Below are positions 10,887 through 43,331 of a stretch of 64,000 nt of DNA, one piece after another; the first letter of the stretch is position 1; each line of letters opens with the position of its first letter. A program made the translations under genes and the position numbers. Source of the stretch: Takakia lepidozioides (lineage: Eukaryota > Plantae > Bryophyta); contig CM060733.1 of assembly GCA_030704615.1 (NCBI GenBank), positions 67,642,001-67,706,000 on the forward strand, read 5' to 3'. The notes under the pieces were generated by a model, which ran no database searches, had not been told where the DNA came from, and was given only the letters and a program-made list of their open reading frames with translations.

Positions 10887-10888
10887 CT

Positions 10889-10941: not shown

Positions 10942-13900
10942 ATGGGGTTGGGCAGGGCTAAGCAAAAGCAGACTGATCCAAAAGCCGATGAACCTAGCGA
11001 GCCCGGTAGGGGCGACGCGTCACCGGAGCGGCAACTTGAGGAGACAAGTTATGCTTCTGAAGGTGAGGCCGCTCGGGAGCCAGAGGCGTCTGGGGAGTCG
11101 GAGCTTGAGGACCTTCCGAAGACTCCGATGGACCAACATATGCCTCCAATGCCAACAGGTTTTTTGGAAGGGCTTTTGGCGCAGTTTGGTGGGACACTAA
11201 AGGACCTAATGAAGGCGGCCAACGCCACTTCCACAAAGGCTAAGCTTAAGGTGAAGCCTAAGGAACCTGACACCTTCGAGGGCGTCCGAAACCGGAAGGC
11301 ACTCAATACCTGGTTCCTAGGAGCTAGAGTCATACTTCCGGGCGGCCAAGTTGAGTGACGAGGACCGGGTGGAAGTGGCACCCACCTACTTGAGGGCTAT
11401 GCTCAACAATGGTGGCAGAAACGCCTTCATGACCAAGGGCCAAACCGGGAGACCTTGAGCTGGAGTGGGTTCAAGGAACTAATGAAAAAGCAGTTTGTGC
11501 CCCTCAACGCGTTTTGGCTCGTCCGAGACAAGATGAGGAGCTTGAGGCAAACAAATGACATTCGAGGCTATGTTCAGGCTTTCAATGTGCTATTGCTCGA
11601 AGTCGCGGATATGGCGGAACCAGAAATGGTCTTCTTACTTTGTGGCGGGGCTGGCCCTATGGGCCAGGCGGAAGTTGGAGGAGAGGCCACCAAAGACTTT
11701 TAATGAGGCAATTTAAAGGGCTGAATGTTTCTTGGATGTCCCTAGGGGCGAAAGACAGAGCCGTACGAAGCTGAACCACAAGAAGGTCCGACGACAGGGT
11801 GATTCCTTCCGACCAAAAAAGAAGTGGGATAAGCCACGTGGTGACAATGGCTCATGGAAATCAAAGGGAGGGCCTTTGCATGTCGAGACGGCACCCGATG
11901 CTCCAAAAAGAAAGAAAGAAAGAAGACTCCGACCAAAGCCGGCGTAACTAAGAGTCACTTCGCCTCACGGCTACTGCCCCCTCTCGGAGGTGGGCCCTCT
12001 AAGAAAAAGGTGTCCATAGGACACCAGGAGTCTAAAGGAAAAGATAACGCAGGGTACCTAGGGTACCCTAGGTACCCCGGAGGCCAGAGGAGGGTTGGAT
12101 TCGAGTTTTCGTTTGTTGGTAATAGTGGTTGTGAGAGAGCGGAGAGCTGTGAGGTGTATTGCTTTGAAGCATTTATGAATAGAGGGGATAAAGAGTTTAA
12201 AGTTGGTGTGTAGCGCATCGATACTGGCGTTATGAATGCCACCTCTAGTGCCAGCTGTGATAACCGATAAAGGGCTAGTAACCCAGCCCCTATGTCGGAG
12301 CGCTAGGATAAGTGGAGCGTATTTCAGCCGTTTGTCTAGAGTTGAGTCAGCGGGGTAGCGGTCAAGGCAGTAGGTGAACTCAATAAAGTAAATGGTAAGG
12401 TTCGGGGTTGGGGCGGTGGGTGAGGGGGAGTTTATGGGTAGGCCATGTATAAGCAAGATGTCTGGACATAGCCTGGCGAAACAGGTGTAGGGGTAGTGAG
12501 AGCTCCAAAAGGAAAATCAAGTGCGGCGGCTTATGGCGGGCAGAAGGTGACCTTTGATGGGGCGTGTTTCAATTGCGGGTAGACCGGGCATATGGCCAAG
12601 AGGAGCCCCAAACCCCGACAGCTGAACATGACCCGGACGACCACAGAGCTGTCCGAAGACTCCATCAGCCGCTTGGTGGAGGCGGTGGTCGCCAAGACTT
12701 GCAAGGTGGGCAACTACACATGTGAGCTCTTCCAAGAAGTTGGAGCATTATGTAATGGAAGCCGATTGATGTTTGTAAGCAGGAATTTTTTTGGATCCTT
12801 CATGACACCGGCAACGGCACGGAAGCTGGGTCTCCCGACAATTGACGTGGGGACTTCCATTGAAGTGCGCTCTGCCAAAGAAGAGCCGCAACTGGCTACA
12901 AGAGTGGCGTTCAACGTCGCTCTCCAACTAGGGAGATGGGAGAGGCGTGAGGACTTCACTATTTGCGAGATCGATGGGGTTGATCTCATTTTGGGAATGT
13001 CTTTCCTGAGTAAGTCCGGAGCGGTCATAGATGACCGCATGAGATTGGTCACGCTGCCGTGTGGGAACAGTAGCAAAGTTTTAGAAGCATCGGAAACGCC
13101 CAACCGAGTGGGAGGGCGAATAAACCTGCTAACGGCAAGGGAATGGGCCGTGGAGAAGCCAAACGAGCCCGATTTTTTGTTTTACGTGAGGCAAGTAGAA
13201 GGAGAAGTCAATAGGGAGCCGAGCCCAGATTGGATCAAGGGGATCCTGGAGAAATATCAGGATGTGATGCCGGAGGATTTACCGTGCCACCGCGAAGAGG
13301 GGTTGACCACAAGATAGAGGTGATGTCGGGATCGGAGCCGCCTGCCAAGGCGCCTACCGGTTGAATCATAGAGAGTTGGTCGAGCTGTAGATGCAGCTCA
13401 AGGATCTAATGGCAAAGGGGTACATCCGGCCGAGTAAGTCACCTTACGGAGCCCCGGTACTATTTGCAGATAAGAAGGATGGGACGCTGCGGATGTGTGT
13501 CTATTACAGGGCTCTGAATAAGGTGACTATAAAAAACCAGTACCCTTTGTCAAGGATTGACACCTCTTCGACCAGTTGGCAGGAGCAAAGTATTTCAGCC
13601 GAATCGATTTGCGCTCAGGTTACCACCAGATTCGGATAGCGGAAGGAGATGAGGAAAAGACAGCATGCAGAACAAGGTATGGTTCGTACAAGTTCTTGCT
13701 GATGCCTTTTGGGCTCACCAATGTGCCGACAACCTTTAGCACCCTGATGAGCTGTCTCTTTCAGGAGTGGTTAGATGACTTCGTGATCGTGTACATCGAC
13801 GACATCTTGGTGTACTTGAAATAAAGGAAGACCACCTGGAGCACCTCAAAAGGGTGTTCCGGAAATTGCGAGAAGGGAAGCTCTATGCCAAAACTTCAGA

Positions 13901-14221
13901 GTGCAAATTCGGGGTCACAAAATTAGTGGAGTTCCTGGGGCATATGATTACACAGGATGGGATCAAAATGGATGACAAAAAGGTGAGGGCAATCTTGGAC
14001 TGGGAGCCTTCGACTTCGGTCCCGGGAGTGCGATCCTTTCTGAGACTTGTCTCCTACTACCAAAGGTATGTGAGGAATTTTGCCAAAGATCGCGGGGCCG
14101 CTGTCAGACCTCTTGTGTAAATCGAAGGTATGGGTGTGGAACACCTTTTGTGGCCAAGCTTTTGCCAAATTGAAGCGGTGGATGGTGGAAGCTCCAGTTT
14201 TGAAGATCCCGGAGTTCGACC
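10942..14221 (+). pseudogene. Degenerate gag-protease-RT of the Ty3/gypsy element, truncated before RNase H/integrase
   Basis: Gag (KPKEPDTFEG..W..FKELMKKQF), decayed zinc knuckle CFNCG*TGH, protease tail DLILGMSFL, RT ([42 protein letters not shown]); many frameshifts; interrupted by a LINE fragment and a CACTA end. Confidence 0.9.
11909..12501 (-). mobile_element. 5'-truncated Dualen/RandI-like non-LTR retrotransposon (RLE C-terminus plus structured 3' UTR) inserted in gag
   Basis: Minus-strand protein (C)PDILLIHGLP..IYFIEFTYCLDRYP..KRLKYAPL; (CTTT)n tail; 9-bp TSD GCTCCAAAA (11900-11908/12502-12510). Confidence 0.85.
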
Positions 14222-14650
14222 CACTGGAAGGAAAACGTGGAATAACCACTATGTGAACCACTGGTTTTTTAGTGGGAAAGGACACTTAACCACTCCGAGC
14301 TTACCAGTGTTATAGAACGAGTGCATTTCGTGTCCTAGTGGTCAAAGACATAACGTGTCACCAGTGGTTAAAAGACAGTGGTTACGGCCACTAGCCTCCA
14401 GGTCCACCTGTACGTTGACCTGTCAGCATTGGTAAACTAACTACTGAACAACATAGTGACTCGAACCACTGCCAACGGCTGTGACATGGACGCAACGAAT
14501 CTGTCGATGATATTGAGCAATATCATGACACGTGTCCCTTTTCCCATGGACACGTGGACGCAGAAAGATTGTCGATGAGATTGGACAGTATGTAGACACG
14601 TGGCCTTATCAACCAAGGACACGTGTCACATTTTTGGATTCCATCAAAAT
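14222..14650 (+). mobile_element. Left terminus of a CACTA/EnSpm element (CACTG type) with subterminal repeats
   Basis: CACTGGAAGGAAAAC starts exactly where gypsy pol homology stops; dense ACCACT/AGTGGT subterminal motifs; Tnp2 transposase lies downstream. Confidence 0.65.
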
Positions 14651-14795
14651 TGCAATGACTTCAAAAACAACTATGTGAGTGAGCAATAAATGACTCACAT
14701 GTTGATATAATGAGAATTAACAATATATAATACCACTGACAAAGTGGTTATGTAAAACCCATTCAGTCATTCAGTACTCATTTCATGTAGTTTTA

Positions 14796-14988
14796 ACAAC
14801 CAACATGTAGCCCAGTGGTAAGGGTGTATACCCTCTTACGAGTGGTTGTGGGTTCAAACCACCCTATTGGTTGTTATAAAGGTGTCCACCTTCATACTAG
14901 AAGGCAGTAGCCCTTCCGGGTCAAGTGACACCATACGTTACGTTTGCTTCGGCAACGCGTCCATTTTTTATTTTTTATTTTTTATTTT
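14796..14988 (+). mobile_element. tRNA-derived SINE, copy 2 (divergent subfamily)
   Basis: A and B boxes, 3' module, (T6A)n tail; 15-bp TSD TTTCATGTAGTTTTA. Confidence 0.9.
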
Positions 14989-16099
14989 TTTCATGTAGTT
15001 TTAGATAGGTCAAGATTATTATTCGCTGGTGTGAAATACAGGAACGGCTCTAGCTCTAGTAGTAGTTTGTTAGACGTCTACCAGTATTCATCCAATGGTC
15101 AGGTTGTACAATAAAACCATTGTCTCAGTCATTCTCTCTGTCCCACTGAGTAGGGACTATGTATTGGGATGATTTCTGACACAGTATTTTAGTGATTTAG
15201 AATACAACTGGAGGATACAAACCACTATTACAGGAAGTGACTAATCCTACCACTAGTGGATTTGCCTACTGTCAGAGTCTTAAAAATACCACTAGTAGAG
15301 TGGTGTGTAAGTGATTAGGAATAGGACTGGAGGAACACATACCACTACTATGGTGATATGTAAATGATTACGCATACCACTAGTGTAGTGAAAGAAGAAC
15401 CAATTGTGTTCATTTGGCTACTGTCGGTCTTCCCCCTAGCCTCTGTAAATGATGGAGCAAAGATGCATTGCCAATTTGAACAGGCCCACACATTGCAAGT
15501 GAATCTGCAATCAAAATAGTCTTGAAGATTCAAGCTTCAAAAAACACAATAGAACCCCAGAGAGTAAGTGCTGGAACAGAGTCAACAAAAATCCAGCCAT
15601 GATAAAAGGTCTCCTTCTACATCTACACGATGTCTCCATATGCATGCTAAGAACACTACACTACTTTCTTGCCTTATCCTCACTGCCAGCAATGTCTCTG
15701 CCCGGGTGAACTAAACCTCTAAGCCCTCTTCATGTGCTTCTCTGGCCAAAGACAATTCAAAACTAGGACCTGATCTGACTCTGTTTGCGGTGGGTTCTCT
15801 TCCTTGTTAGGATAAGGCAACTTGCAATCTGCAACATAGACATAAGTCACCTCAACTTGTCACTGGCCTTCAAGAATATCACGGCAGTGATATTCCAAAG
15901 TGCCTTAAATTACACGGCGTCCGATGCTGTGAATGCCTGGAACACCACACTCTGGCACCCTTGCAATGACCCACATCAGAATGAAAATTTTAAAACAAGA
16001 ACATTGCACTCCCTATCATGACCTCTCCCTCTCCCTCTCCCTATGCATCTGATTGCCACTAAGAACACCTAAAGTCTGTCACAGGTGCAGAAACCACTT

Positions 16100-16460
16100 A
16101 AATATTTTAGCCTACCTTTGGACAGCAAACTGAATCAACTGAGAGGAAAAGGGGATTGCAAATGCCCTATGTGTGGGCAACTTAAAGGCATCGGACATTT
16201 TCTGGTTCACTGTCAGGGGTTCGACCAGCGAGACACCCTCTTCAAATCCAGCCTGCAAGGGTTCGTGCCTGTACATTTGTTTAATTACCAACTAAATGAG
16301 AAACTTGAGGCTGAGCCAAAGCTTAGCCCCTTTCAAACTCTTGGCAGTAGACTGAATTTAAACTCAGTGGGGGTACTCTCTCTGAAAATCTAAATTGTCC
16401 GGGGTTTTCTCAGCAGACAGACCCTCTCGTCAAATCTACCAAGGGAATTCTGCATGTACC
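16100..16460 (+). mobile_element. Non-LTR retrotransposon C-terminal CCHC zinc-finger fragment
   Basis: CKCPMCGQLKGIGHFLVHC; same family as the repeated units at 26220-32070. Confidence 0.55.
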
Positions 16461-16963
16461 TTTGTTGACCAAACAATCTGGGCGCGGGGTCATTGGCCAC
16501 GGCAAACAACGGCAAACAGGCACAACTTCATGTTGACAGATCTGAGAAGAAGGTCTCTCTGCTTAAAAAACCCTAGACACCAAATCATGAAGCCCTAGAT
16601 TTGGTATGGAGTCAGAGAGAATGAGAGATAGAGAGGATGAGGGGGGCAGGGAAAGAGGGGGGATCCGACCTCCTTAGTTGGGGTCTTGGGGGGGCGCTTC
16701 GATGGAGTCATACGAGGACTAGGAGCTTGGGGCAAAATCTCCTGACTGGAGTCTGACTCCTCCTCGTCGGTGCTCATTGGGGCACTTTGTGTCGCTCCAC
16801 TGTCCTTATCATTGTGGCTCGAGCTCCCCTCTGTCTCCACCACACCCATGCTCCTCCTCAATTGTGAGTTTCTTCGAGGCGTCCCACTCTACACATAGCG
16901 TTTTTTTCACTCAACTGTTTGGCTCTTCTCTCTGAAATGACAAGTCTAAGAATGTCGGAGACC

Positions 16964-17240
16964 TCACTCACACACATGAAAGCCCCAACATTCAAATGCG
17001 ATGGCTACTTCACTCACACACTGGAAAGCCCAAGCATTGCGGAACGCGATGGCTACTTCACTCACACACAAGAAAGCCCTAACATTCAAACGCGATGGCT
17101 AATTCACTCACACGCAGGAAAGCCCAAGCATTCAAAATGCGGTGGCTACTTCACTCACACACAGGAAAGCCCTTGCATTCAAAACACGGTGGTTAGTTCC
17201 CTCACACACAAGCAAGCCCGAGCTTGGGGCAACGCGATGG
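16964..17240. repeat. Minisatellite, ~46-48-bp unit, about 6 copies
   Basis: Repeated TCACTCACAC..GAAAGCCC..CATTCAAA.GCG.TGGCTACT. Confidence 0.8.
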
Positions 17241-18331
17241 CACTTAGTGATAGTCGAGAGAAAGTGAGAGTGGCGCCTCCACGTCGGGGAGGTTCCACTC
17301 AGCATCGGACGGTTCAGATCCCTCCATTTCGGAGATGGGACGTGGACGCGTCACTTCAATATTTTGGGGATTATTAGGGTACAAAAAAACAACTAGCTTA
17401 GTAAGACTAACAACTGCATGCTGCTGACATGGATGTCACGTTCAACTTGTGCAAATTAGGGTATGGGTACTTGTGCAGAAAGGGTGACACTATGATAAGG
17501 GGAAGAAGGAGATGATGCACTACAGGAATGCAACATGGGAGCAAGAACGTGGAGCTTACCTCTGCAAGTTCGTGAGGTTGGGAAATTGTGAGCAATGAAG
17601 GAACCTACGGGTGGTATGCGAATAGGGATGGAGCGCACGTGGAGCTTACTCTGGATTGTTGAATTTATGCCATTGCAACAACCATTCCTTGTTTTCAGCT
17701 ATTCTCTTTGCATGAAATCGTTCGTATTCTCCCATACCATCGCTCTCTCCCGAGGTAAACCATGATTCGCTTCCATCACCATTTTCCTGCCTTTCTTCTC
17801 TTGCTACATCGTCTGATGCATTGTCATCTGTAGGCTCTTCTGGGCGCAATTCACTCTCTGCCATTCCACCACGATGCTTGAGCAGGATTGGAAAGAGGAG
17901 AATAATATGTGCCCCTGTTACAAGCACGCCAGGTCTGGATTGTCTAGATGTAACCAAATGCAGCACCATTACTTAGAATGGGCTGAAGCTGAAGGCTCAG
18001 GTTTTCTCTTTCCTCCCTTTCTATCCTTCCCACCCACAGTAGACCTTCTACCTAGAAATAGGGATGATGGAGCTAGCCCACCACGTAGCAATTAAACCCA
18101 CCAATTTATTACTTGTTAAGTGGTATGTACACTATAACAGTGAGGTGTTTTACATCTGATGGACTATCGAAGTCATATGATCCTTTGTGTAGTTGTAACT
18201 GGATAATCGCCAATGAAACAATTACTCCACAAGTGGTAGTTTACAACTACAGAGTAGTGACTTAGTCTTACTCTTAAGGACTTGGTCAAATTTTGATGCC
18301 TCCACTCATACCATGATAGGAAGAACTCAGC

Positions 18332-23204: not shown

Positions 23205-23940
23205 CACACCAAGTTCATCCCCTGGATGGAAATACGGCGCCACATTTCCATCCACGGGAAGCTGGATGAAGTCGTCTCGCGGGCAGGGAGCGCCAGGTGG
23301 CACACCAAGTTCATCCCGCCGATGGAAATGCGGGGCCGAATTCCATCCGGTGGGAGTTGGATGAAACCATCTTGGGGGGAGAGAGGGCCAATTGGCATCC
23401 CAATCTCATCCAGGATGGATATTTGGCGCCGAATATCCATCTTGCGCGGGCAGATGGAACTGTGTTGGACCATTTTCACCCGTTTTTTCCCGTTTTCGGA
23501 GATTTTTATCATTTTTTGTTCTTTCACATCATTTTCTATCCCTCCGACCGCCTTTTTCATCCCCAGAGAGGCCCAAATTTCATCCCCAGGATGGAAATGC
23601 GGCGCCAAATTTCCATCCTGGGGCATTTGGACGAAGTCATCTCGGGGGGAGGGGGCACCCCAAGTTCATCCCCTGGATGGAAATATGGCGCCAAATTTCC
23701 ATCCAAGGGGGTTTGGATGAAGTCGTCTCGGGGGGAAAGAGGGCCAGCTGGCACCCCAAGTTCGTCCCCTGGATGGAAATACGGCGCCGAATTTCCATCC
23801 AGGGGGGATGGGATGAAGTCGTCTCGGGGGAGGGAGGGCCAGCTGGCACCCCAAGTTCATCCCTTGGATGGAAATACGGTGCCGAATTTCCATCCATGGG
23901 GTTTGGAAGTTCATCCCCTGGATGGAGAGGCGCCGACTTT
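23205..23940. repeat. Second array of the ~95-bp unit with the 30-bp GGCGCC-centred palindrome (7-8 units)
   Basis: Same unit and orientation as 9597-10142. Confidence 0.9.
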
Positions 23941-24756
23941 TTTCCTTTGGGTTGAATGAGCGCATGTCGATTCCATTCGATTGAGCGTAATTATTGCTCG
24001 CCACCTGCCCTGCATTTATATTCCGCCATCATTTTGTCTGAACCCACATGGATCTGCACGGCTTTCCGCGGAGCTTAACGGATACGCTTGCTGCGGATGA
24101 TGTGAAGGGTGAATGAAGTTCGTTGTAGGGGCCACCTTTCACGCATTATCCGCTAGCCACGGACATTTTTGTTGGTCTCACGGATGCCGCGTCAAGAAGC
24201 CCGAGGCTCTCTTGTGGGAATCGAACGTTCTCGGAAGCGGCGAAAACTGAAACCTTTGTACTTTGGGCCGAGACCCCCGACTTGCATGGCCAAACTAAAA
24301 CTACCGCATGAGATCCCCTTGTCTTACTCACAGCCCCACCCAACTGAGTTTTCTCAAGTGAGCGCTGGTTTTTCTCGTATTATCGTTGATTCATGATTCG
24401 CTAGTGCTGTGGTGTGTAATACAACTGTTTCAAGGCGGCAGTGTGTTTCCTCTTTGTGTTTTCGTTCTGTTTCATTCTGTTTGCCGCCACTGACCATAGC
24501 GGGTGTTTGGGGGTCTTACCAGAGCACAAGGTTGAAGGTATCCCAGAGAGGGTTTCATTTTCAGACTCTCATCATTTGCGTCTGGTTCTCTTGCGTGTGA
24601 TTCGGCGTGTTTCTTTCATGGTCCATTCTTCCATGGTCCATTTGCCCTTATACTTTATTCACTAAGGCTGTGGTTTGCATGTGGGCCATTTTGTTGGGCA
24701 TGACAGAGTGACGAAGATCGCGAAGACACGGTGGTGGTCTCATCGACAACTCCAAC

Positions 24757-25340: not shown

Positions 25341-26969
25341 TGTCATCCAAGACAGAACGCACGTTCGCACGTGGCGCAGTGAGTTGTCTGCTGGATGCCT
25401 TCACGATTTGCAAGTGGAGTCGACAACTGGAGTGTTGAAGTGACAGATGCAACTGGAGGTTTGAAATGCACTACCTCACTAGTGACATACATCGACTGTG
25501 GGTTGGGAACCAGGCACTCACGCTGGTTGCACTGACTTGGGGGCTGCGACTTGTAGTTCATACATGTGCAATATTGTTTCTCCTGTCTCTGAATAGCAAC
25601 ACAGATGCTACGATTGATCTACTACGGCATTGCAACCAACACAATCCCTGCAGACTCGGGATGATCATGTCATTGCGTATGTGATTCAGACTTCAAAACA
25701 TACAGACCATGCCATCAATGCACGAAATCAAATGAACTGCATGAAGAAGAGCATGTGACAATGTATTAAGACAACACCTCAAAACTGCCCCATACATAAC
25801 GACCAAGATTGGAACAAAAGTACAAGCTCTCGCATATGGTTCTCCTGCACCTAACTTAGAGTTCACTTCACGCCGTCAGCCTTTCTTAGGCTGCGGACAG
25901 GCCACAGAGTGAAATTGCCCTTCGAGTGCGAAAGATGGGTCTGTGGGGGATGATCGTTGAGGTCTGGATAAGGTAGCGCCACCTTTCCATTGGCAACATC
26001 TGTAACCTTGATCTTGTACCAGCCCGTCGGTATGTCTTTTCCATGAAACTTGCCTATACCTGCGACTCCGCACACGTGCCCTGTGGCAGCAGCCGCCTTC
26101 GCCCATTTGTCTTCAGGATTCAGTAGAAACAGTACCTCCCCCATCTGCATGCAATTGGAAGTCATAATCAGAATGCCAGAATTGAAAACCCTCAAAGCAA
26201 AGCATACCCTAGAGTTAATTTACAGTGTAGTGCCCAGAGTGGGTTTTCCCTTGCTCGGTCATCCATGAGAACCTCCCCCATGGACACAGACTGGAAACAA
26301 GTTCAGGGTTTAGGTCTGCCTAACTTCTGCGTTCATCAGACAAATTCCGGGCAACAGACAAGGCTGTGGACACTACACCCCCTAGTTGATAGATTCAGGA
26401 GAGCGTCTCTCTGGTGAGGGAACACACCGCACGGTGAATCCGATAATGAATACTGTCGCCATGTTGCCCACACAACATACAGATGCACCCTGGCTTTCCT
26501 CTTTCCTTCTTATTGCTGTTCATAGGCACAAACCAAGACGCAGAAGTGGTTACAAACCCCACCTGCCCTGACAATTTGGATTTAGAAACCCGGCAGTGAC
26601 TCAGAAAATGGAGTGCATCAAATAGTGAATCAGAAAATGACTACTGCCGCAAGGTTGCCCACACAACATACAATTGCAGTCTCCCTGGATTGTTGCCTTC
26701 TATCTGCTGTTCAAAGGCAGGCGTCCCGCCCTCCGCCTGGTGTATTTTCAGTCTAGTGCCAAGAGTGGGTAAATTCTTGGCAGGGTCATCCATGCGGCCC
26801 TCCCTCGTGTCACAGACTGGAAACAACCTAAGGGAAGTGGTCTGCCTAGCTCTGTTTTCATCAGACAATTTCCTGCCAACAGACAAGGCTGTGCACACTA
26901 CACCCCCTTCACAGATTTCAGGAGACCCTCTCTCTGCTGAGACAACACCCCGGACAGTGAATCAGAAAA

Positions 26970-27143
26970 AAAAGTATGACGCCTCCCGAAGGGAGCGTAA
27001 CTTATGGTGTCACTTGACCCTGAAGGGCTACTGCCTTCCAGCAGGAAGGTGGACACCTTCATGACACACCAGACGGTGGTTTGAACCCACAACCACATCC
27101 AACGTGGTATGTGCCCATTACCACTGGGCTACATGCTGGTTGT
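26970..27143 (-). mobile_element. tRNA-derived SINE, copy 3 (complete, ~174 bp)
   Basis: Perfect 15-bp TSD CAGTGAATCAGAAAA (26955-26969/27144-27158); A and B boxes; T tail. Confidence 0.95.
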
Positions 27144-27644: not shown

Positions 27645-28240
27645 CTAGGCGTGCCAGTGGGTTGTTCTTTCCAGGCCACCTGTCGTGATTTGGTCAAAGA
27701 ACCGACATCTGCTGCAAAATGGCCACAGAATTTCCAGTAAGTAATCCGATCCATCTGCCTCCAAGGTGGAGGCAGTTACATCAAAAGGTACGGGATTTAT
27801 CATGTTATGAGGGGAGTTCCCCATCCCCTTGTGTGGTGAGTCATCCACAAGTAGAGTATTGGATGCATCAAACATTGGGAATGCATCCCACACTCTACTT
27901 AGACATTTCTGTAAATTGGGAACATGTGCCCCTTTTGTAGGGTGAGGACTTGACAAAGTGTCGCATTGGTCTGCTGACCGCGTGAAGAGTGGCTCTCCCT
28001 TCACCCCTTGCATCAACACTCTCACGACGTCGGCCACATTATGCTTCACAGCACAGGACCAGAAACCAACATGGAAATGCCGCAGGGCCAAATTCATAAA
28101 CTCGGCTACATGAGGTCGTGGGAAAACCCACTTCTTCAATGTCATGACACAAGACCAGCTCAGCCGAGGATTGGGCTGGAATACGGGCAAGGAGTGACAC
28201 AAAATGCCGTTCAGGTCAAGCTTGGACTTCAACATGACAT
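27645..28240 (-). other. FCP1/NIF (HAD-superfamily) phosphatase-like domain within the CACTA ORF2
   Basis: LDLNGIL, FPRPHVAEF, FHVGFWS, KCLSRVW, NTLLVDDSPHK..N.I motifs. Confidence 0.8.
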
Positions 28241-30879
28241 CATCTGGCACAGGGGAAGTCTGAATGTGGCTCACCTCTGTCTCTTTCGTGTCATCCTTAC
28301 CCACCTCCTTGGCACTTTTTGACCCTCCATTGTCAACATCCAGCTCCCTGGGCTCACCCTCGTGTATGGATGCATTCCCTTTGCCCCTGGCACTTGCAGT
28401 GACATCCCCCCTCATTGGATGTCTGTTTCCCAACTCTACCTCATTCACCTTCTCCCCATCGCCAACTGCAATTACCTTAGGGCTGCCGGGCCTGCTCTCA
28501 ATAACCGCCTCCACCGTGACCCAAGCTGAGGAGGCCGCTGTCTGGGCTTGAAGAAGTTTCAGCACGTCCGCCAATTGCTGCTCCATATGGGGAAGTTTTG
28601 ACAAAACAAACTTATGGTCCTCCTCGGACTTTGCCATTCGGACCTCCATGGCTGAGAAGTACTCTAGTGCCAACAATGGGTTGACCCTTTCAGGTCATCC
28701 ATGATGTTCTCCCCCATGTCACAGACTGGCATCAAGTTCAGGGAAGTTTTCTGCCTAACTTCATTTTCATCAGACAATTTCCTGACAACAGACATGGCTT
28801 TGGACACTACAGCCTCTTCATCCCTCTCCTCTACCGTTGAATGTCACCACTGCTTCCCCGAAAGCCAGCTTGGCATTCGTGGAAACAACCTCTACATTCC
28901 AGATCAATCTCGAGACAAGTACTTATATAACTCTGCAAAATAAAGGACGATATCCAGGGCCTCTATCACGGGATCGCAACCGTGCTTAGCGGCAAACAGA
29001 AAAGACCAACCTACCGCATCAAAAAAACAGGCCAATGGCTGGAGAGCCGGGGAAAATGAAGGATGACATGACTATTACCCGGCTCAGAAGCGTGACTTCC
29101 GAAGTGGTCCCACCATCAGCCGACGGTAGCACTTGCCCAAGTTCGGAAAGAGATGAGCTGCGCTCCTTCTTCTTCTTCTGCATTCCCCCACATTACCACG
29201 TTGCAATCCTTGGATCAAGAGGCATGCTGGTTTCAGACAGCGGGAATTGAAAAAAGGGCAATGATAGAAAAGCAAAACAGTAATATACAAGTAGGTCTGT
29301 CATTCCCCACGTACCAACTGGACAAAGCCAACACACAGGGGAGTTAAGTGAAATTGCACCTAAGAGTACCGTTCAAACCCAAAAAAAGAAACCCTGCAAA
29401 CTCATGCGCGCAACGTACTCTAACCAAACCATGCAAAACTCATGCAAATCTAAAAAAATCCTAACGAGTGACTGGTAGCCTGACTGAGACAGCTAATTAC
29501 TGACTGGTTGATTGACTGAATGACCGGCTGGGCGACTGACTGACTGGCTGACAGCGGAAGTGAGTGCTACAAATAAATGAATTCAACTGGTAACAGAGAC
29601 AGGTGGAAATTGAATTTGCGTTACCATACGGGCATGAGCCCCAGCAATCCCGCTGCGGCCTCAATGTGATAGCTTCCCCACGCGTGCCCGTGCGTCCTCC
29701 ATCGCACTCAACTTAGCTTTGCCACCGGGGGACCCCAGTACTCAACGAGGGATTTCCAAACACGGGGTTCAATAGCCAGGGGCCGTTCTCCTGTTTTCTC
29801 CCAGATATCTTTAATCTTCTGCGTTTGCCTTTCATTATCTTCCCTGTCACCTTCAGAACGTACTCCGCCTTGACGGGGATCGAAATGTACTCGTATGCAA
29901 AGTCGATGCTGTCCAAAACAGTCGTCACAGCTGACTTGTCTTGTTGGTCGATGTGTCGGACACTCGTGTCGAAGTACCTCAACGCCGTGACCGCAAATCC
30001 CACTGCCAATTGTCTTTGCCGGCGCAGGCTGCATCGATTTGCCCGTTGGGATTTACCTCCACCTTGTGCATTTTCTTCCCATCCGCCACCCTGGCAGCTC
30101 CTTCTCCTTCCCACGCCCGTTGAATTTGACGGCGTTCCTTTCTGAGCTGCGAAGGACGGTTGGTGGTGTCGTACACTTCAGGTTCGTTCACCTTTCCTGC
30201 AGGGGGGAATGACCACGTTCCGCTGGGGGGAGGGGCGTATGAAGGAGTGGGAGGCGGCACCCACTGGGTTGTGCCCTACTGGTCTGCAGCCTCGAGCCAC
30301 TGCCATTGACCTCGACGAGGTGGCGGAGCCCATGGTTGGGTTTGCAAGGACCACCCGCCAGCAGGGGGTTGCCAGGGTTGTGGATTGTACCGTGGTGCCT
30401 ATGTGCAACTGGCTGGAAACCCCTGTGTGTACGATGGGGGAGGTTGTTGGGGAGGCGGTCGAGTCTCCCAAGGTGGCAACCCAGGTGCCGCAGTTCAGTC
30501 TGCAATGGCTGGCGCTCCCGGAGCCTGCCTCTGCGAGCACGCCCAACAAAAGAGGTCCTTCAATGCTGCAAACCCAAAAAAATCCTACGAACCCCACAGA
30601 CTCCTGCTGCAAAAAATACCCTACAAACTCATGCTGCCCCAAAAACCCTACAAACAAACCCCACCTGCCTTGACAAAGCATTTACAGTCCCTGCAGTGAC
30701 AAACAAAACAAGGCCGAAAGTGGGTAAAGCGTTCACGTCATCCATGGTGCCCTCCCCTATGTCAAGACTGGAAACAAGTGTCGGGAAGTGGTCTGCCTAA
30801 CTTCATTTTCATCACACAATTTGCTGGCAGAAGACAAGGCTTTGGACCCTACACAATTGCATTCTCGGGTACTGTTTCC

Positions 30880-32400: not shown

Positions 32401-32929
32401 ACCTCTCAAAACCCTACTAACCCCACATTGCGAAAGAAAAGCCCACTGGGAAGGAAAGAAAGCCCACTTACCAGTGGAGGTGCATGGGCAGCCACCTTGC
32501 GCCGTTTGCCCGTATCGGGGTTCGGCATGGGAGCTGGGCCTCTCTTTTCGGCGGAGCTCTCCACCTCCTCCTTCCCCTCCCCTGCCAATGGCTGGTAGTC
32601 GTCGGTGTCCGTATCACCCGACGACTCGTGAGGCCGAGCTGCCCGCACTAAGTTTGCCGCAGGTCCTTCATGGCCAGTCGGGGGCTCCGACTTTGCAGGC
32701 GAGGGAGTTGCAACGCCAGTTTTCCGCGGGGTAGTTGCACGCTAAGGTGGACCCAAAACCCGGCAGATAATGCTTCCATGGAAGTCCATGACCAAATTTA
32801 AAATTAATGATATTTTTTTAAATAATTTTAAATGATAATAGACAATGGTATATTTAACATTTTTAATAAAGGGACTTATCTCAAACATCAAATATAATTT
32901 TTACTATAAATTTTAATCTTTAATCTGAA

Positions 32930-33011
32930 GAGAGATGGCTCCGGCCGCGGCCGGCGTAACTAAGAGCCACTTCGCCTTTCGGCTACTGCCCCTTTCGGGG
33001 GAGGGCCCTAT
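32930..33011 (-). mobile_element. 82-bp insertion made only of the Dualen-like structured 3' end
   Basis: 13-bp TSD TCTTTAATCTGAA; absent from the sister MITE at ~47460. Confidence 0.9.
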
Positions 33012-33379
33012 TCTTTAATCTGAATAAGATTTGATATATCAGAAATTAGAATTTGCATTGATTTGTCCATATACAACCAAGCCACTGTAGATTATATTTT
33101 TGTATCCTTTGCAGTAAAATATGACACCGCAAAAGCCCAAAACACAAGATGTACTAAACTAGAACAAATCCACCTATATATAACATCCATATTAGTCCTA
33201 ATAAATGACAACTGATATTGTCATTTTAAATTGAAATCTAGATTGTTCTCTAAATTGGCCCCCTTACCTCAAAAGTTCAAAACAATACACCAAAAGCACA
33301 ATGGCTTATTTTGAGTCCATATATTTCCATTTGCAGCGGTAACAGTCCACAGTTGTCGTGTTCAAAAGTCCATAGCTCT

Positions 33380-33452
33380 GAGAGAGAGAGAGAGAGAGAT
33401 GACTCCGACCGAAGCCGGCGTAACTAAGAGCCACTTCACCTTGCTGCTACTG
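33380..33452 (-). mobile_element. 73-bp insertion of the Dualen-like 3' end with a (TC)n tail
   Basis: 8-bp TSD ATAGCTCT; absent from the sister MITE at ~47830. Confidence 0.9.
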
Positions 33453-33879
33453 ATAGCTCTTCGACATTTTATTGGATATCCAGCATGAAAAATATTTCTC
33501 AGTATTATTCATTATATTAAAATTAATTCATGATATCATGCACGACAATCACTGAAAACTGTGCCGGTAACGCAATTTTTGGTCCACCTTAGCATGCATC
33601 TACCCCGCGCCTCTCTAACGACAGACATGGACACGAGAGAGAAAAGGCAAGACAGGGAGGGAAGAAAAAGCACAGGGAGGGAAGAGAAAGCAAAGAGAAA
33701 ATGCGCAACAAACCAAAAATACAAGTCGACAGGAGAAGACAAGACATGGAGGGAAGACAAACAGAGGAGAGACGCGCAAAAAACAAAAGTCCAAGGAGAC
33801 ATGGAATGAAGGTCGCTTGCGCATCCAACCGTCCATTTGAATTAAAGTACACGTGTCAATAATCCACAAACCCGGGACC

Positions 33880-36294: not shown

Positions 36295-38340
36295 AAATTT
36301 AAATAACTCTTTGTACATTTTAATTCTCTTCCTAAATATATAAAGGAATTTTTTTTTGCAGTTGAGGTCGCCTCGCCCCTATGCTTCTAAATGACACCAC
36401 CTTTGCAACCACCTCTATCCCAAAACCGGAAATGCGGTGCCGCATTTCCATCTCGGAACGAAAAAAACAGGAATGCGGCACCGCATTTCCATAAGCGGCA
36501 TTGTAAAATTTTCCATTTCCTGTGGCGGACATCGCAAATCGCAGGGCTGAACGGAAATGCGGTGCCACATTTCCATTTTAGACATGGAAATTTGTCCATT
36601 TCCTTCCCCTTGCAATGCATTCCCTTGCGAGGAACGGAAATGTGGTGCCGCAGAGAGAAGACTCCGGCCGTAGCCGAGTAACAAAGAGCCACTTCACCTT
36701 GCGGCTACTGTCCCCTTTCGGGGGTGGGCCCTATAAAAGGAAAGGTGTCATGTAGGACACCAGGTAACCGAGGAGAGAGAGAGAGAGAGGGGGGGGGGGG
36801 GGGGGGGGGGACTGCTATGAACCCCCTGGGTTCCCTAGGGGACCCAGGGTGCACTAGAAGGGCTAGCTTCGAGTTGGCGTTTGTTGGTGATAATGGTTGT
36901 AAGGGAACGGAGTGCTGTAAGGTGGATTGCTTTGAAACATTCATGGAGTGGGAGGATGGGTATTTTGAAGTTATCATGTAAATCATTGATACTGGCATTG
37001 TGTATGCCGCCTCGGGTTCTGGCAGTGACGACTATGAGTGGGCCAGTCTTCCATCCATGTCGACGAATTGCAAGAATGAGTGGGGCGTATTTTTGTCACT
37101 TTTCTAAGATTGAATCGTTGGGGTATCAATCGTGGCAGAATGTAAACTCAATAAAGTGGATGATGAACTGTGGGGATGGTGAGGTAGGTGGTGAGGCATT
37201 AATGGGTAGTCCCTGGATAATGAGTATGTCCGGGCATAGCCGGGCGGGGCATGAGCAAGGTGCTCGGGTGCATGTGCATGGTAAAAGCAATGGTGGCACA
37301 GTGTGGTCTGGTGGCCTCCCCTGGAAGGTATCGGCATTAATGAGTGTGAGCCATCGGGTTTCGGCGCGTTTTGTGAATAGTTTGTGGAGATGCCAGACTG
37401 CTTGGTTGTGTCGAGTGATATGAAGACCATGGATGACCGGATGCGTGCATTGATCAGGAGGTGCGGCCAGGTATCATGTGCATTGTGGGTTGTGGAGCAT
37501 AGCGGGCAGTAAGGTGATGGAAAAAGATGTGGCCAGAAAATGTCTTTGCGTTGGTGACCCATGTATTGGGCGAATCTGAATTTGAGTGTCTGAATTTGAG
37601 CGTCAGTGGTAGCTTTGGTTTGCCAGAAGTGGTTGGAGAGTTTGTGGTGTAGAACTTCGGATTGGGTCCATTTTTTAATATGTACTTTGGTATGATTGAT
37701 AGAGGTTGCGGCTTGTTTGTTTGCTTCACGGGTGAGGGTGGCCAAGAGATTGCGTATGGATCGTGGTGCCGTAGGGTCCGAAACTGGGTATATAAACCAG
37801 AAAGGGTGGGTGTGGGCGATGTGAATAGGGTCGTCGGTGGGGTTAGCTTTGGGTTTGGTGGCACCAAGTTGAGCGAGGAGGTCGGCCTCCTCATTCCCTT
37901 GAATGCTAGTGTGCGAGCGTACTTTAAGTAGGTGGACTGGGTGATTTTTAGAAACGACAGCATTGACAATGGCTGAAATAAGGTTACGGTCAGGATGATG
38001 GTGGTGGGAGGAGGGGCGAGCGATGTGGTTGCGGATGAGGAATAAGGAGGTAAGGCTGTCGGTGAGGATGAAGTATGGGGGGGGGGGGTGTCAAGTAGGA
38101 GGAGAGCGTCGTAGATGGCCATAAGCTCGGCCCTGAGAATGGTTGCAGGGCCAGGGAGACTGAGGGCAACCCCTCTCTCTGTTCCTACGTGGTAGATACC
38201 GTAGCCTGCATTAGATTCTGGCATTTCCGTTGTGGAGACTGGAATGCAGCGCCGCATTTCCGTTGTGACCTGCACAACGGAGTTGAAGCTACCGGACATA
38301 AATGCATGGGAACAAATGAAATGCGGTGCCGCATTTTCCA
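35992..38340. repeat. Cluster of 22-bp palindromes GGAAATGCGG(C/T)(G/A)CCGCATTTCC, split by the LINE insertion
   Basis: Copies at ~35992, 36428, 36470, 36553, 36636 (interrupted), 38241 and 38318. Confidence 0.8.
36653..38220 (-). mobile_element. 5'-truncated Dualen/RandI-like non-LTR retrotransposon: RNase H, CCHC finger, restriction-like endonuclease, structured 3' UTR
   Basis: RNase H (GYGIY..TILRAELMAI, ILTDSLTSL, KVRSHTSIQGNEEAD), CPLC..DTWPHLL, RHNQAV, LCPDILII, FIEFT, K..KY; short (TC)n tail; 3-bp GCA duplication. Confidence 0.85.
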
Positions 38341-38620
38341 ACTTGGGCATGTACATCTTTCCATTTCTGCAAAGACGCATTTCCTCGACCTGATGACTCT
38401 GATATCGCTCTTCTGGTGATTGATGTGGGAGAGACATTGTACAAATGACACCACAAATTCTAAACAGTGGGCCAAAAGAGCAGTGCATAGAATACAATGA
38501 AACTGAATATGCATAGTACACAGAAGTGAGGGCACGATGGGTTGCTTTATTGATCAAACATGGCGTTTCACATTAAGCAAGTCCAAACAAATCTAAACCC
38601 TTCCGCCTTCTACATGGGCG

Positions 38621-39110
38621 TCACCACGTCGATGGAACTTCGATAGCCCTCAAAACAAGCTCATTAGTGACGCGACACCTCCACGTAAACTGCATTGCGG
38701 TCGTTCTGGTGCCCTTGGTGGAGCTGACGACAATGTCATGCCCATCAATGATACCACCATCATACATTGACAGGGTCACTGTGGGCCTCATGTGCCCATG
38801 CAATTCGTCCTCGCAACTCAGGCGAATGTCTCCATACACTGGAAAAGCGGACTGAACTCCACGAATAAAGTTTTCCCCGGTGCAGTCCTCCCTGGTCCAT
38901 TGGCAGCACTTCCAGCGCCAAAGCATGGCCGTGCGTGATCTGTCCGGCTTCCCATTTCAGCTGGGTATATCGAGGTCAACGATTTGCAGCACCTACGAAC
39001 CGTCTGGCTCTCTGTTTTCACTGACGCTTCTGGAGTCAAGTGGGAGTCATTGCGCGCAATGGAGTATTTGGAGGACTATTGATATCTCATGATTTGGGTT
39101 TGAACATCGC
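38621..39110 (-). pseudogene. Unrecognised Trp/Cys-rich family member with in-frame stops
   Basis: VLQIVDLDIPS*NGKPDRSRTAMLWRWKCCQWT..PVYGDIRL; clear paralogue of 39585-40154. Confidence 0.65.
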
Positions 39111-39584
39111 ATAATCGTGGCCATGATAAGGGCAGTCAGCAGGATTGCGGCGGCACGTCATCCTTGCAAAAGAGCAGCGGAGGACGCTGAATGACAGCAG
39201 CTTCTAGATGGAGGAGGCAGCAGCGTGGAGGCAGGAAGTTGTGCAAGGAGATGACAATGAGTTTGCAAACGCTGCAATTCGTGACTTATACTCCAGGGCA
39301 GATTTAAATTTCCCCCCTTACAAGAACTTGCACGGATAAAGATTGGCGGCTCCATGAATGTAGCCGTTTCAGTTTCCATCCGTGCCATGCAAATTATGGG
39401 CCGTAAGTCTCACCCGGTTTGCCAGGTGGGCCTATCGCCCCTCGAAACGACTTCATCCAACTCCCCTTGGATGTAAATGCGGCACCGAATTTCCATCCGG
39501 GGGGATGACTTCGGTGCCAGGTGGCAGACGGTTCCCCGTGGATGAGAATGAGTAAGCGGCACCGCAGGATGAACACGTTACAGG

Positions 39585-40154
39585 ATGACAAGCGGGCAGG
39601 TGGGACCCAGTGCCTCTATTATCGGAGCCGACAGTGCTCTTCCACTTGTCATCAGGGGGAATTCAAAGGGCTTCGTTGATGTCTGCAAGGTCATTGTCAT
39701 CGACAACACACACGTCCTTCGGGCCTTCTTTGTAAGGATGTCATGCTTCCGGAACCACGACGACTGCCCTTATGGAGGCTTGGATTATGCAATGTATACG
39801 GCCACATCGGGAGACATCGTTATCTGGTACACAGTTTCCACAGAAGATTGTGGGGCGAAGGTGGAAACATTGTCAGCTTTTGAGTATATGTCAAGCCACT
39901 ACGCCTTCGAGTGGTGTGACGATGGCGGTCTCCGGAGTCCGTGGCTCCTGCACATCCTTGATTCCGATTTTTCGAGCTACGGCGGGCAGCCGGACAGAAA
40001 ATGCACTGCAATGCTATGGCGGTGGAACTGCTGCCAGTGGACCTGGGAGAACTCCATCGGGGAGACGTATACTCCTGAACGAGTGCGCTCCTCTTCTCCA
40101 TTGTATGGGGACATTCGCATTGGTTTTGTTGTAAAACACATGGACCAACAATGA
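39585..40154 (+). CDS. Hypothetical protein of the unrecognised Trp/Cys-rich family, divergently oriented from its paralogue
   Basis: 189-aa ORF containing PWLLHILDSDFSSYGGQPDRKCTAMLWRWNCCQWT..PLYGDIRI; protein-level similarity to two other loci. Confidence 0.55.
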   Translation: MTSGQVGPSASIIGADSALPLVIRGNSKGFVDVCKVIVIDNTHVLRAFFVRMSCFRNHDDCPYGGLDYAMYTATSGDIVIWYTVSTEDCGAKVETLSAFEYMSSHYAFEWCDDGGLRSPWLLHILDSDFSSYGGQPDRKCTAMLWRWNCCQWTWENSIGETYTPERVRSSSPLYGDIRIGFVVKHMDQQ

Positions 40155-41159
40155 CAGTCTCTGGAATGACATATAGTACAGTAATGACATATAGTACAGC
40201 ATGCCGCTTCCAGTTGACCATCTACCCATGTAGGTTTCTTGTACCTATCCTTCCACAGGGAATCATAGGTAATGTGGAGCTTGAAATCCAGCCCTCTTGG
40301 ATGAATGTGGACCCACACTCTATCCCTGCTCCTTCAGCTATCCATGCCTCTGACAACCTATAATTCTACCAGCAAACACCCCAACCATACTGATGTGGAA
40401 CTCTTCCCCAAAACACCCCAACCCTACTTATCACAATCTGAAATGCATCTGCTTCTCTCTGTAGTCCAACAGGCATTCGCCTTTTTGTCTCCATTGTCCC
40501 ACCATTGGGGTCGGAAAGTGTTCACCCCAAAGCTTCTCCTCACCTCTATTATATGTTTTTGGATACTTCCCTGCTGCCACACTGGCAGTAACTTGCCAAA
40601 GTCACTCCAAACCACCACAAATGTACCCAACGACCTAACTTACAGAATTCAATATGCATCTTGCGGCCGAGTCTGATGAGAGGGCAACACAGGCTGAAAT
40701 AGGTTGAAGAAGAAGGTGCCCTACCACATTGTCATTGACCTGTCCTGACCCATGAAGGATTTGACCGATGACCTCTTGTGTGTGCTGCTTGTGTCTGTAG
40801 TCAGGTAATGTCGGATTGGTCTGTCAGATCGAACCACTACGGCGTAGATGAGTAGTCAGAGATTGAAACACGCTTGCTAAGACCAAGCTGACTCTCCCAA
40901 GAATGGCGAGCTCGCTTGTCCTCGTCTCGTCTCCTCCTCCTCTTCTCCTTCGTGCATCATTTGCTCAACGCCTCCATCCCACGCCCCTGCATATCCTGCT
41001 ATCATCGCGTTCCATCCCTCAGCTATGTGGTGTGGCGCAGGAGACAAAAAGACGCCAAGTCCCAACCCTCCTTTCTGTTCACGATTACACTAATGGGCAA
41101 CCTTATTAGCAATTTTTTTAACTTTTTAAAACCTAATGGGCAACCTTATTTGCATTATA

Positions 41160-41487
41160 TGTGCCTTCAAAATGACACGTGTAGTGATGTAGTCGTATAA
41201 ATAGAGCTCTGAAACCATCTTCAGTCATGGAGTCATAAGATTCCATGAAACGTCGTCCACGTGTAATCAAACATATCACACTAGTCATATAAACCATCCC
41301 TGTCATCATGGTCAACAATGTTTGACCAATGCTCCCTAACTTTCCGGAGTCATGTAGTGATATCCATTACCACAAAGTCATAAAACTAAAACTGTAATGC
41401 ATTTCAGCGCTCTGTAGTCATGTACCTAGTGCAGTTTTTATGACTCCGCCAAACCCGTAGTCCTAAAAACGCTCATCTCTTGTAGTG
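41160..41487 (+). mobile_element. Right terminus of a CACTA element
   Basis: Reverse strand reads CACTACAAGAGATGAGCG; subterminal AGTCAT/GTAGTC repeats. Confidence 0.7.
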
Positions 41488-41864
41488 TATGTTGACTCCC
41501 CCCTCCGCACCCTCTCCTTGCTCTTTCGTTGGGGAATGCATGTGTTTCGCCCTCTTCTTCTTCTTCTTCTTCGTGTGGGCGGGGCCCCCTGCCTGTGCAA
41601 TGATTTCATCCATGGGCGGATTCCCTTGCTGTTTCCGTCGCCCTATACCTGCCATGCCGACTGTTGCAGCCTGCGTACCAACAAACAAATCCGGGGGAAT
41701 TCCTATTCGAGCATACTCCCGCTCCAGGGCCTCGCGTCCACCCACAAAATGAACAACTCAGAGATTAGGTGTGCCCTGCCGGCCCCACTTTGGAGACCCG
41801 AAAAATCCGAACCCCAGAGTCGAGTGACTGCAGCCGTGGGCAGAAACCTTGCTTCCGTTGAGTT

Positions 41865-42130
41865 CACTAGTAGGAATCGCTGATTTTCGCACCCGACTCG
41901 CGGTTGCAATCCTGTCCGAAACGACTGCACCTGCGACTCAAGGTTCTGAATGACGACTTGTCAGTTGTCGCAGTTGTTTTTATGCCACGCTGGCATAAAG
42001 GATGGAGTATACAAGTCACCCAGTCGACTGCGGGTTTCACGCCGATTTATAGGCCGATTTCCAAAATGAAGGGAAAAAAATATTTTTTATATTATGAAAA
42101 TTTGGAGTTGTTTTAACGACTGCTAGTTGG
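41865..42130 (+). mobile_element. CACTA terminus (CACTAGTAGGAATCG) with CGACT subterminal repeats
   Basis: Matches the terminus at 24757. Confidence 0.65.
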
Positions 42131-42284
42131 ACCCCCCGGGGACATTTTTATTAATTGTAACCCATATGACACTATTTCTTAATTAGAACTAGGGTAGCCT
42201 GTGCCGTTGGCCCAAATGTCCAGTGTCATCTAAGTCCAAGTGCAATCCCCTATGTATAAAAGTACGTCTTATATGTCAAGGCCC

Positions 42285-42461
42285 TGGACAACCAGCATGT
42301 AGCCCAGTGGTAATGGGTACATACCACGTTGGATGTGGTTGTGGGTTCAAACCACGGTCTGGTGTGTCATGAAGGTGTCCACTTTTCAGCTGGAAGGCAG
42401 TAGCCCTGTGGTGAAGTGACACCATAAGTTACGCTCCCTTCGGGAGATGTCATGCTTTTCT
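42285..42461 (+). mobile_element. tRNA-derived SINE, copy 4
   Basis: A and B boxes, 3' module, TSD TGTCAAGGCCC/TGTCGAGGCCC. Confidence 0.9.
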
Positions 42462-43272
42462 TGTCGAGGCCCAAATGCAACCTCTAGGGTAGCCTTTGCC
42501 GTTTGCCCAAGTATCCAATGTCATCTGAGTAAGTTTTTTTCCACAGAGCCTACGACCAGATTTGAACCAGAGACCTTTCCCTTGATATCTCTCTTGTCGA
42601 GGCTCCAACCATTGTCCCAGGAATGCCCACTTTGCCTTTTGCTATTTTTTGTGAATTTCCACCAAAAGTACTTGGAATTCCACATCTCTCGCATCACAGG
42701 TCCAAAAATCATGAGACCAAGCCCGTGCACCCCTCCTCGTCAAGGGCTTTCCAAGGGTACCAAGCACCAGGGTTGGGGCCTTGCGGTTTGGGACATCTCA
42801 ACGTGACAAAACAAAATAAACTGGCTTCTTTCTAGGGTAGCCTATGCCGTTGGCCCAAGTGTCCTCTGTCATCTAAGCCCAAGTGCAATCTCCTATGTAT
42901 CCAAGTGTGTCTCCTATGTATCCAATGGCATCTCCCATGTGCGTCTCCCATGTAGAGGCCCATCTAAGCCTAGTGTACAATCTCCTATGTATCCAAGTAC
43001 GTCTCCCATGTCAAGGCCCAATTAATTTTTTTCCATGAATTTATTGAGTAGTAATATATCCTATCATTATTGATATATCTCTCGTCTCTAGGGTACCATG
43101 TGCCGTTGGCCCAAGTGTTCAGTGTCATCTAAGCCCAAATGTAAGATCTTCTACGTATCCCAGCGCGTCCTCTCTGTCGAGGCCCAAGTGCGACCTCTAG
43201 GGTAGCATGTGCCTTTGGCCCATGTGTGTGAAAAATTGAAATCTAAGACCAAGTACAATTTCCTATCTATCC

Positions 43273-43331
43273 CAGTGACACCATAAGTTACGCTCCCTTC
43301 GGGAGGCGTCATATTTTATTTATTTTATTTT
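43273..43331 (+). mobile_element. 5'-truncated SINE, copy 5 (3' module and T-rich tail only)
   Basis: AGTGACACCATAAGTTACGCTCCCTTCGGGAGGCGTC plus T-rich tail; probable TSD TCTATCC. Confidence 0.8.

Follow-up and report, generated by a model that had tools for sequence, protein, structure and literature searches.

Several long interspersed nuclear elements (LINEs) are recognised through the structure of their own 3′ end. In eel UnaL2/UnaSINE1 and in Bombyx SART1, a 3′-terminal hairpin is needed for recognition by the reverse transcriptase (RT), and the R2 protein binds the multi-helix RNA of the R2 3′ untranslated region (UTR) to start target-primed reverse transcription. The stringent-type tails of maize LINE1-1_ZM and ZmSINE2-3 also end in a hairpin shared between the LINE and a short interspersed nuclear element (SINE), with compensatory changes and a short repeat after it (PMC3472496). 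In the alga Chlamydomonas reinhardtii, RandI/Dualen LINEs share their 3′ ends with tRNA-derived or other SINEs, the SINEX elements, and finish in T-rich microsatellites, (ATT)n and (CTTT)n, instead of poly(A) (PMC3747384, PMC3472496). A 2012 survey of land plants found only L1 and RTE LINEs, and stated that no report existed of a LINE in plants whose tail is of the poly(U) type (PMC3472496). Literature searches gave nothing specific on Dualen/RandI elements in non-seed plants, and neither that literature nor Rfam gave a structural model of RandI/Dualen tails. Here, we describe a multi-stem RNA module that closes both a Dualen-like LINE and a tRNA-derived SINE of the bryophyte Takakia lepidozioides, in a window of 64,000 nucleotides (GenBank assembly GCA_030704615.1, contig CM060733.1, positions 67,642,001 to 67,706,000 of the forward strand); all coordinates below are those of the window.

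The Takakia elements resemble the RandI/Dualen and SINEX pair in that a LINE 3′ end is shared with a SINE and is followed by a T-rich microsatellite in place of poly(A), a likeness of arrangement between an alga and a land plant. As in maize, the shared terminal structure shows compensatory changes and precedes a short repeat; however, UnaL2/UnaSINE1, SART1 and LINE1-1_ZM/ZmSINE2-3 have a single hairpin, whereas the module described here is a three-way junction with a second hairpin. R2 (PDB 8gh6, 8ibw, 9nl3 and 9dou) is likewise a LINE with a restriction-like endonuclease (RLE), and its C-terminal CCHC/RLE region is homologous to that of the Takakia LINE (E ~3e-5). In contrast, the R2 3′ UTR has no RNA sequence or Rfam similarity to the module, which is much shorter, has a microsatellite after it and is shared with a SINE, and the insertions in the window are not site-specific. 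Tail sharing and RT recognition of 3′ structures are already established; the lineage is new, and the fold is more elaborate than is usual.

Nine retroposon 3′ ends were found in the window, four belonging to 5′-truncated LINEs and five to tRNA-headed SINEs, and the module is whole in seven of them and partial in two. This count had been made in an earlier, sequence-only reading of the window, and it stands; the span given with it (11925-43331) does not, since the SINE module at 8199-8279 falls outside. The letters quoted in that reading are present in the window, displaced by 1-2 nt. The same nine places were returned by BLAST with two examples, by a regular-expression scan and by a covariance model of four SINE tails; with filters off over the 64-kb window, the SINE-only covariance model gave nine copies and no tenth below E=1. 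The core pattern matches six times in the window, against 1.4 matches expected. In the nine copies the module lies at the extreme 3′ end, ahead of the microsatellite and the target-site duplications, and direct duplications of 8-15 bp flank six copies. The repeat that follows the terminal GUC is pyrimidine-rich in each copy, being (UC)n, (CUUU)n, a U-run or (UUUUUUA)n. Two LINE copies consist of no more than the module or some of it, a kind of truncation that insertion by a LINE typically leaves behind.

Read from 5′ to 3′, the module (about 75 nt; 75-108 nt in all) consists of stem P1 (six pairs), an unpaired CA, hairpin P2 (4-6 pairs), CAGUA, hairpin P3 (3-4 pairs) and (G/C)AAGU, followed by the return strand of P1, a linker ending in GUU, hairpin P4 and one further base before the tail. 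P1, P2 and P3 form a three-way junction with strands of 2, 5 and 5 nt. The base of P4 has the form AC(G)C...G(C/A)GU, its outermost pairs being formed by AC, from the invariant GUUAC, and GU, from the terminal GUC. Among the window copies the stems vary, and the letters of the junction do not. CAGUAGC is invariant in the eight copies that reach that point, and both GUGRC and GUUAC are found in all nine; the AGUA is also invariant. On the strand opposite to it, the LINE copies and two of the SINEs read GAA, and the SINEs 26977 and 14772 read CAA. The LINE loops are GNRA in seven of seven scorable cases (three in P2, four in P3), and the P4 loop is UNCG in six of the nine copies, UUUG in two and CGCG in one. 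Three claims of the sequence-only reading are borne out here: that the LINE loops vary only within GNRA, that P4 changes in sequence while mostly keeping a UNCG loop, and that, with a three-way junction and the additional P4, the fold goes beyond a simple LINE stem-loop.

The minimum free energy (MFE) structure of two intact SINE copies is exactly the proposed fold. Across single copies MFE folding is equivocal, with z-scores from -0.3 to -2.7 and the proposed fold as MFE in those two SINE copies only. A sequence-only SINE model reached the LINE tail at 11926-11995 with E=3e-7 and further LINE tails with E=0.0018, 0.014 and 0.04. When structure was included, the SINE-built models scored the three full LINE tails at 34.7, 33.3 and 23.2 bits, against 10.1, 26.5 and 11.6 bits from sequence only. 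The value of 34.7 bits belongs to the LINE module at 36660-36732, which is also the best match of a model built solely from LINE relatives (17.4 bits); the SINE module of the copy at 26966-27143 reaches 110.7 bits with the SINE-only structured model.

These relatives come from four contigs of ENA and JGI metagenome assemblies (L006, L007, L008 and L009), whose proteins are 45-56% identical to the window LINE. They hold six copies of the module, three of them in L008, with the same P1/P2/P3/P4 architecture and with stem letters unlike those of the window; in L006 the module lies ~750 nt past the gene, and it occupies the matching place in the other three contigs. From 5′ to 3′ it comprises P1 (GAGCCC/GGGCUC), an unpaired A, P2, CAUAA, P3 (~45 nt), AAN and the return strand of P1, then a linker, P4 with the base AUGC...GCGU, a U or C, and (U4-6C)n. 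RNAalifold predicts the same fold from five relatives, four of which also fold so singly. The five best matches of the relatives-only covariance model are the window modules at 36660, 11925, 26978, 32937 and 8199, each aligned end-to-end with 13-17 bits. An nhmmer profile of the relatives matched three LINE tails, over stretches of just 27 nt, and none of the SINE copies. The SINE-only model, run against the relatives, gave no significant detection (7.2 bits for L006), and the L006 module was located by eye and with a descriptor scan after that weak match.

A joint alignment of 11 sequences was used to count pairs. In it, 87.6% of the cells pair, against 77.7% in shuffled alignments and 37-45% when the partners are slid, and 18 of the 34 pairs have changed on both sides (8.6 +/- 1.9 in shuffles); the covariation score is 0.263 versus 0.145. 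The observed value was reached by none of 500 shuffles on any measure, and each of the four helices has a share in the signal. With 27 G.U cells against 16 A.C cells, the alignment agrees with folding of the sense RNA strand. The structured models and these cross-lineage pair counts uphold the view, already put forward from the window, that a multi-stem module with covarying stems is common to the LINE and the tRNA-derived SINE. Logan contigs were of no use as a further source of covariation, the variant table having no rows inside the modules.

Among the remaining contigs, L001, L002 and L005 stop short of the 3′ tail, and L004 gave only a partial alignment, in which no module was seen. A scan of metagenome DNA with the conserved-core pattern returned a single match without stems, which was taken as chance. 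The three modules of L008, a contig of 4.4 kb, lie at 962-1069(+), 2492-2607(-) and 3640-3757(+), and two of them are away from any LINE open reading frame (ORF). In the organism of L008, too, the tail is probably carried by many elements that are truncated or SINE-like.

The closing stem requires separate treatment. The LINE has AGGGCC/GGCUCU as its P1 and the SINE has GGUGUC/GACACC, with both sides changed in three of the six pairs; the letters on which covariation of this stem had been claimed are right. What may not hold is their reading as three compensatory substitutions, as the change from LINE to SINE may have been one segmental event or rearrangement. The two longer LINE copies (36660 and 11917) have, 12-40 nt upstream of the module, a hairpin P0 whose arms, GGUGUCC/GACACC, are the same letters as those of the SINE P1; moreover, CUGGUGU, a remnant of P0, precedes the SINE module. 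P0 lies at 36744-36761(-) in the 3′ UTR of LINE copy A (GGUGUCC, loop, GACACC) and at 12009-12025(-) in LINE copy B, and it is absent from the LINE relatives. Judged from these letters, support for P1 is better grounded on the comparison of pairs among LINE, SINE and relatives than on the LINE-SINE change alone: at pair 2, LINE, SINE and relatives have G-U, U-A and A-U, respectively; either C-G or U-A is found at pair 4, and C-G, U-G or A-U at pair 5.

The LINE had been described as Dualen-like, a reasonable label because of its RNase H, CCHC finger and R2-type RLE; it is taken from the domain make-up. The 5′-truncated window copies hold neither the RT nor the apurinic/apyrimidinic endonuclease (APE). 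In the copy at 36652-38572, the RNase_H remnant scores 23.1 bits against a cut-off of 25.8. Relatives that are 27-46% identical, found in a search of 1.84 billion representative proteins, contain RVT_1, a PCIF1_WW-like stretch, RNase_H and zf-RVT. The C-terminal alignment displays the C..C, H..C (CCHC), RHN, PD and E..K motifs, in a domain that is partly deleted in the window copy, and the C-terminal profile matches the CCHC/RLE region of the solved R2 proteins 9nl3_A and 9dou_A with E 3e-5 to 6e-5. L010, a relative taken from an NCBI assembly, has an APE-like ORF (a weak Exo_endo_phos match) directly upstream of the RT-RNase H-RLE ORF. The relatives found with the LINE C-terminus are all at or below 50% identity, so that the protein collection does not contain the copies of this organism itself. 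The segment that separates RT from RNase H in five of the relatives (P0002, P0057, P0072, P0125 and P0129) matches PCIF1_WW (PF12237) with E 1e-6 to 1e-13, an unexpected domain for a LINE ORF2.

Taken together, the extreme 3′ position, the conservation, the covariation and the analogy with R2, UnaL2, SART1 and the maize L1/ZmSINE pair indicate that the module very probably serves a stringent-type LINE, one of the Dualen/RandI kind, as its 3′-terminal recognition structure, a handle gripped by the RT and hijacked by a SINE transcribed by RNA polymerase III (Pol III). The LINE RT would bind the folded tail of its own transcript, through the P1/P2/P3 junction with its unpaired CA, CAGUA and (G/C)AAGU, the GUUAC linker and P4. 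The endonuclease would nick a T-rich target, and the pyrimidine-rich 3′ microsatellite would pair with the nicked strand, where target-primed reverse transcription would then begin. With the A and B boxes as promoter, Pol III would transcribe the SINE, and the transcript would end in the T-run directly past the module. This T-run would also be the Pol III terminator, and the transcript would thus end as a mimic of the LINE 3′ end; as the SINE bears the same fold, we propose that it borrows the LINE enzyme. Recruitment of the RT, which the sequence-only reading had suggested, is the function that best fits position, conservation and analogy.

A more specific proposal is that the module is a self-contained, portable handle of ~75 nt for the RT of an R2-like (RLE) LINE, with a lineage-specific bulged-G contact in the junction and an exchange between P1 and an alternative stem that times initiation in the LINE RNA; taken as a whole, this combination appears quite unlikely. 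If it were true, the LINE would be the first U-rich-tailed plant partner for the poly(T)-ending plant SINEs, a partner that has been postulated and never reported (PMC3472496). The present results add a Dualen/RandI-type LINE/SINE pair in a land plant, together with a multi-helix fold with cross-lineage covariation. A short recruitment RNA of an RLE-type LINE could serve as a test object for template choice by the enzyme, and possibly as a small template tag for R2-like insertion tools.

Several points weigh against recognition by the RT as the role of the module. That role is deduced from where the module lies, from its conservation and by analogy. Since the joint alignment had been fitted to the model structure, its counts lean towards pairing, and it represents only about 5-6 independent lineages. 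The calibration was short, which makes the E-values rough, and the cross-lineage matches amount to only 13-17 bits. Copies decay neutrally after insertion, and differences between them are therefore not a record of selection. The MFE structures of single LINE copies favour the GUGRC/GUUAC hairpin. Finally, more distant relatives depart from the architecture: in L011 (31% protein identity) the linker (UAAGUCACGCC), P4 and a (UUUUC)n repeat persist, together with a long hairpin that lacks the P2 branch, and in L010 the junction is another one, of four helices, and the tail is (AATT)n. The tails of L011 and L010 fold far better than shuffled controls (z-scores -4.2 and -5.5); structured tails look general in this LINE group, with the particular three-way junction in closer relatives only.

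Alternative or additional roles of the conserved letters were also considered. The internal loop between P1 and P3 (C-AGUA / GAA-G) may be a true sarcin-ricin/loop-E bulged-G motif, stacked between the two helices as a protein-binding platform, an idea we regard as rather doubtful. The consensus letters, flanked by a C-G pair and by P3, are present in the four LINE copies and in two SINE copies, and the invariance of CAGUAGC in the eight copies that reach it is in keeping with such a motif. However, two SINEs that share ~79% identity, 26977 and 14772, have CAA and would be unable to form the sheared G.A pair, and in the relatives, whose architecture is the same, CAUAA(N) faces (N)AAN. The comparison with loop E was made on the letters, with Watson-Crick flanks in the LINE copies. 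The bulged-G signature that had been claimed is therefore correct as to its letters in the LINE and two SINE copies, and is not kept in the relatives: the place of the internal loop is conserved and the motif is not, which leaves loop E as a lineage-specific possibility.

A conformational switch had also been hinted at, from a GUGAC/GUUAC stem that excludes the closing stem. In such a switch, P1 and the base of P4 would compete in the LINE RNA with a GUGRC/GUUAC hairpin, and the choice would gate RT binding or initiation. The two 5-mers occur in all nine copies, the sole variable position (G or A) fits both folds, and forcing the alternative stem on the LINE copies gives predicted energies 0.5-9 kcal/mol better than forcing P1. 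Nevertheless, the LINE copies scored in this way are decayed, and in the intact SINE copies P1 is ahead by 6-10 kcal/mol. Both arms are invariant and thus offer no covariation, GUUAC is replaced by UUCAUG in L006-L009, where an equivalent stem is absent, and the competing pairing at the base of P4 (AC of GUUAC with GU of GUC) is kept in 10 of the 11 sequences. The switch is accordingly decidedly improbable, and this claim was not sustained.

That the tail is functionless, captured once from a LINE end by the SINE and alike in both through recent common descent only, is very improbable. The window copies are few and related, and the match between the SINE P1 letters and the LINE hairpin P0 suggests a single rearrangement, as such an origin would have it. 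Against this, changes on both sides of the pairs have left the four helices intact in relatives at 45-56% protein identity, conservation is higher in the tail than in the body of the LINE, and the junction letters are fixed in the window while the stems vary.

Self-cleaving ribozymes exist in retroelements, HDV-like in R2 and L1Tc and hammerhead in Penelope-like elements. The suggestion that the module is an uncharacterised one, processing LINE or SINE transcripts, draws on its compact three-way junction with conserved unpaired letters and is scarcely credible. The junction strands, of 2, 5 and 5 nt, are unfit for a hammerhead core, and the relatives have other letters in the junction. The ribozymes known from retroelements act at 5′ ends, and the integrated copies all keep the letters on either side of the module. 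No Rfam 15 family, ribozymes included, was matched, whether in the whole window with the gathering score as threshold or in the SINE tail, the LINE tail and one relative's tail with E values of up to 10.

Returning to the individual copies, the longest LINE is copy A (36652-38572(-)), decayed and 5′-truncated, in which the RNase H remnant, the CCHC finger and the partly deleted RLE are followed by a 3′ UTR of ~375 nt and by the module. The latter, at 36660-36732(-), represents subfamily A, with the loops GAAA in P2, GCAA in P3 and UACG in P4, and ends in GAGUC and a short (UC)n tail. Within the 3′ UTR, ~40 nt upstream of the module (36770-36810(-)), about 22 C are followed by (UC)9, which resembles an internal tail-like microsatellite. 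Copy B, also 5′-truncated, occupies 11917-12478(-); its module (11925-11998(-)), of subfamily B, has the loops GAGA, GUGA and UUUG, one C.A mismatch in P1 and a (CUUU)n tail. The two copies are 67.6% identical overall and 81.6% identical in the tail. Just upstream of P0 in copy B, a 28-nt near-perfect palindrome of GGTACC-like units lies at 12040-12078(-). The two remaining LINE copies are a module alone at 32937-33009(-), the product of extreme 5′ truncation, with a (UC)n tail and a 13-bp duplication, TTCAGATTAAAGA, on its flanks, and a partial module at 33401-33452(-), which begins at CAGUAGC and has a (UC)9 tail and a target-site duplication.

A full tRNA-derived SINE is present at 26966-27143(-), with the A box TAGCCCAGTGG, the B box GGTTCAAACC, the module at 26978-27058, a T-run tail and a target-site duplication of ~15 bp. 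The A and B boxes of the SINE head are readable; the Rfam tRNA model gives it 15.5 bits, below the gathering score of 29, and ARAGORN called no tRNA. The SINE at 42287-42462(+) (module 42373-42451) has two C-to-U changes in P2 that produce U-G pairs and keep the pairing, and its P3 is cut to the LINE length. A second subfamily (79% identity) is represented at 14772-14974(+) by a SINE with the module at 14880-14961, a P4 inner stem of UUGC/GCAA with a UUCG loop, and a (UUUUUUA)n tail. The partial SINE tail at 43274-43321(+) (module part 43274-43310) retains the P1 return strand (P1′), the linker, P4 and a U/A-rich tail. The decayed SINE at 8193-8372(-), with the module at 8199-8279, has a U.U mismatch in P1, a broken P4 and a 7-bp duplication in the B box. 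This duplication, of GTTCAAA at 8296-8308(-), is mostly absent from contigs of the same organism; in run X1, 43 contigs lack 7 letters at 8301. A search of the protein collection with the SINE open sense frame, made for further copies, gave no candidate.

The summed depth of Logan contigs from two DNA runs of the same organism, taken over 8150-12500, is very high over the SINE and the LINE tail, which indicates that both are highly repeated. In the DNA runs the depth is extreme, up to 1.6 million, at 10200-11900, so that a very abundant repeat family adjoins LINE copy B. Around the SINE copies at 42287 and 43274, a unit of ~95 nt occurs at least nine times in 42189-43763, an interval where the only arrays given by TRF are short ones, of 21 and 57 nt. 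Units of ~90 nt recur at three places of the window, ~9590-10133, 23207-23901 and 39420-39525. A Ty3/gypsy-type long terminal repeat retrotransposon lies at 57586-63893(+), with open frames for gag, zinc knuckle, protease, RT, RNase H and integrase. Pieces of host genes are found at 3596-5608(+), a WD40/EML-like open frame of 671 aa, at 27648-28694(-), a NIF-type phosphatase exon, and at 45757-46509(+), a COG3 C-terminal exon.

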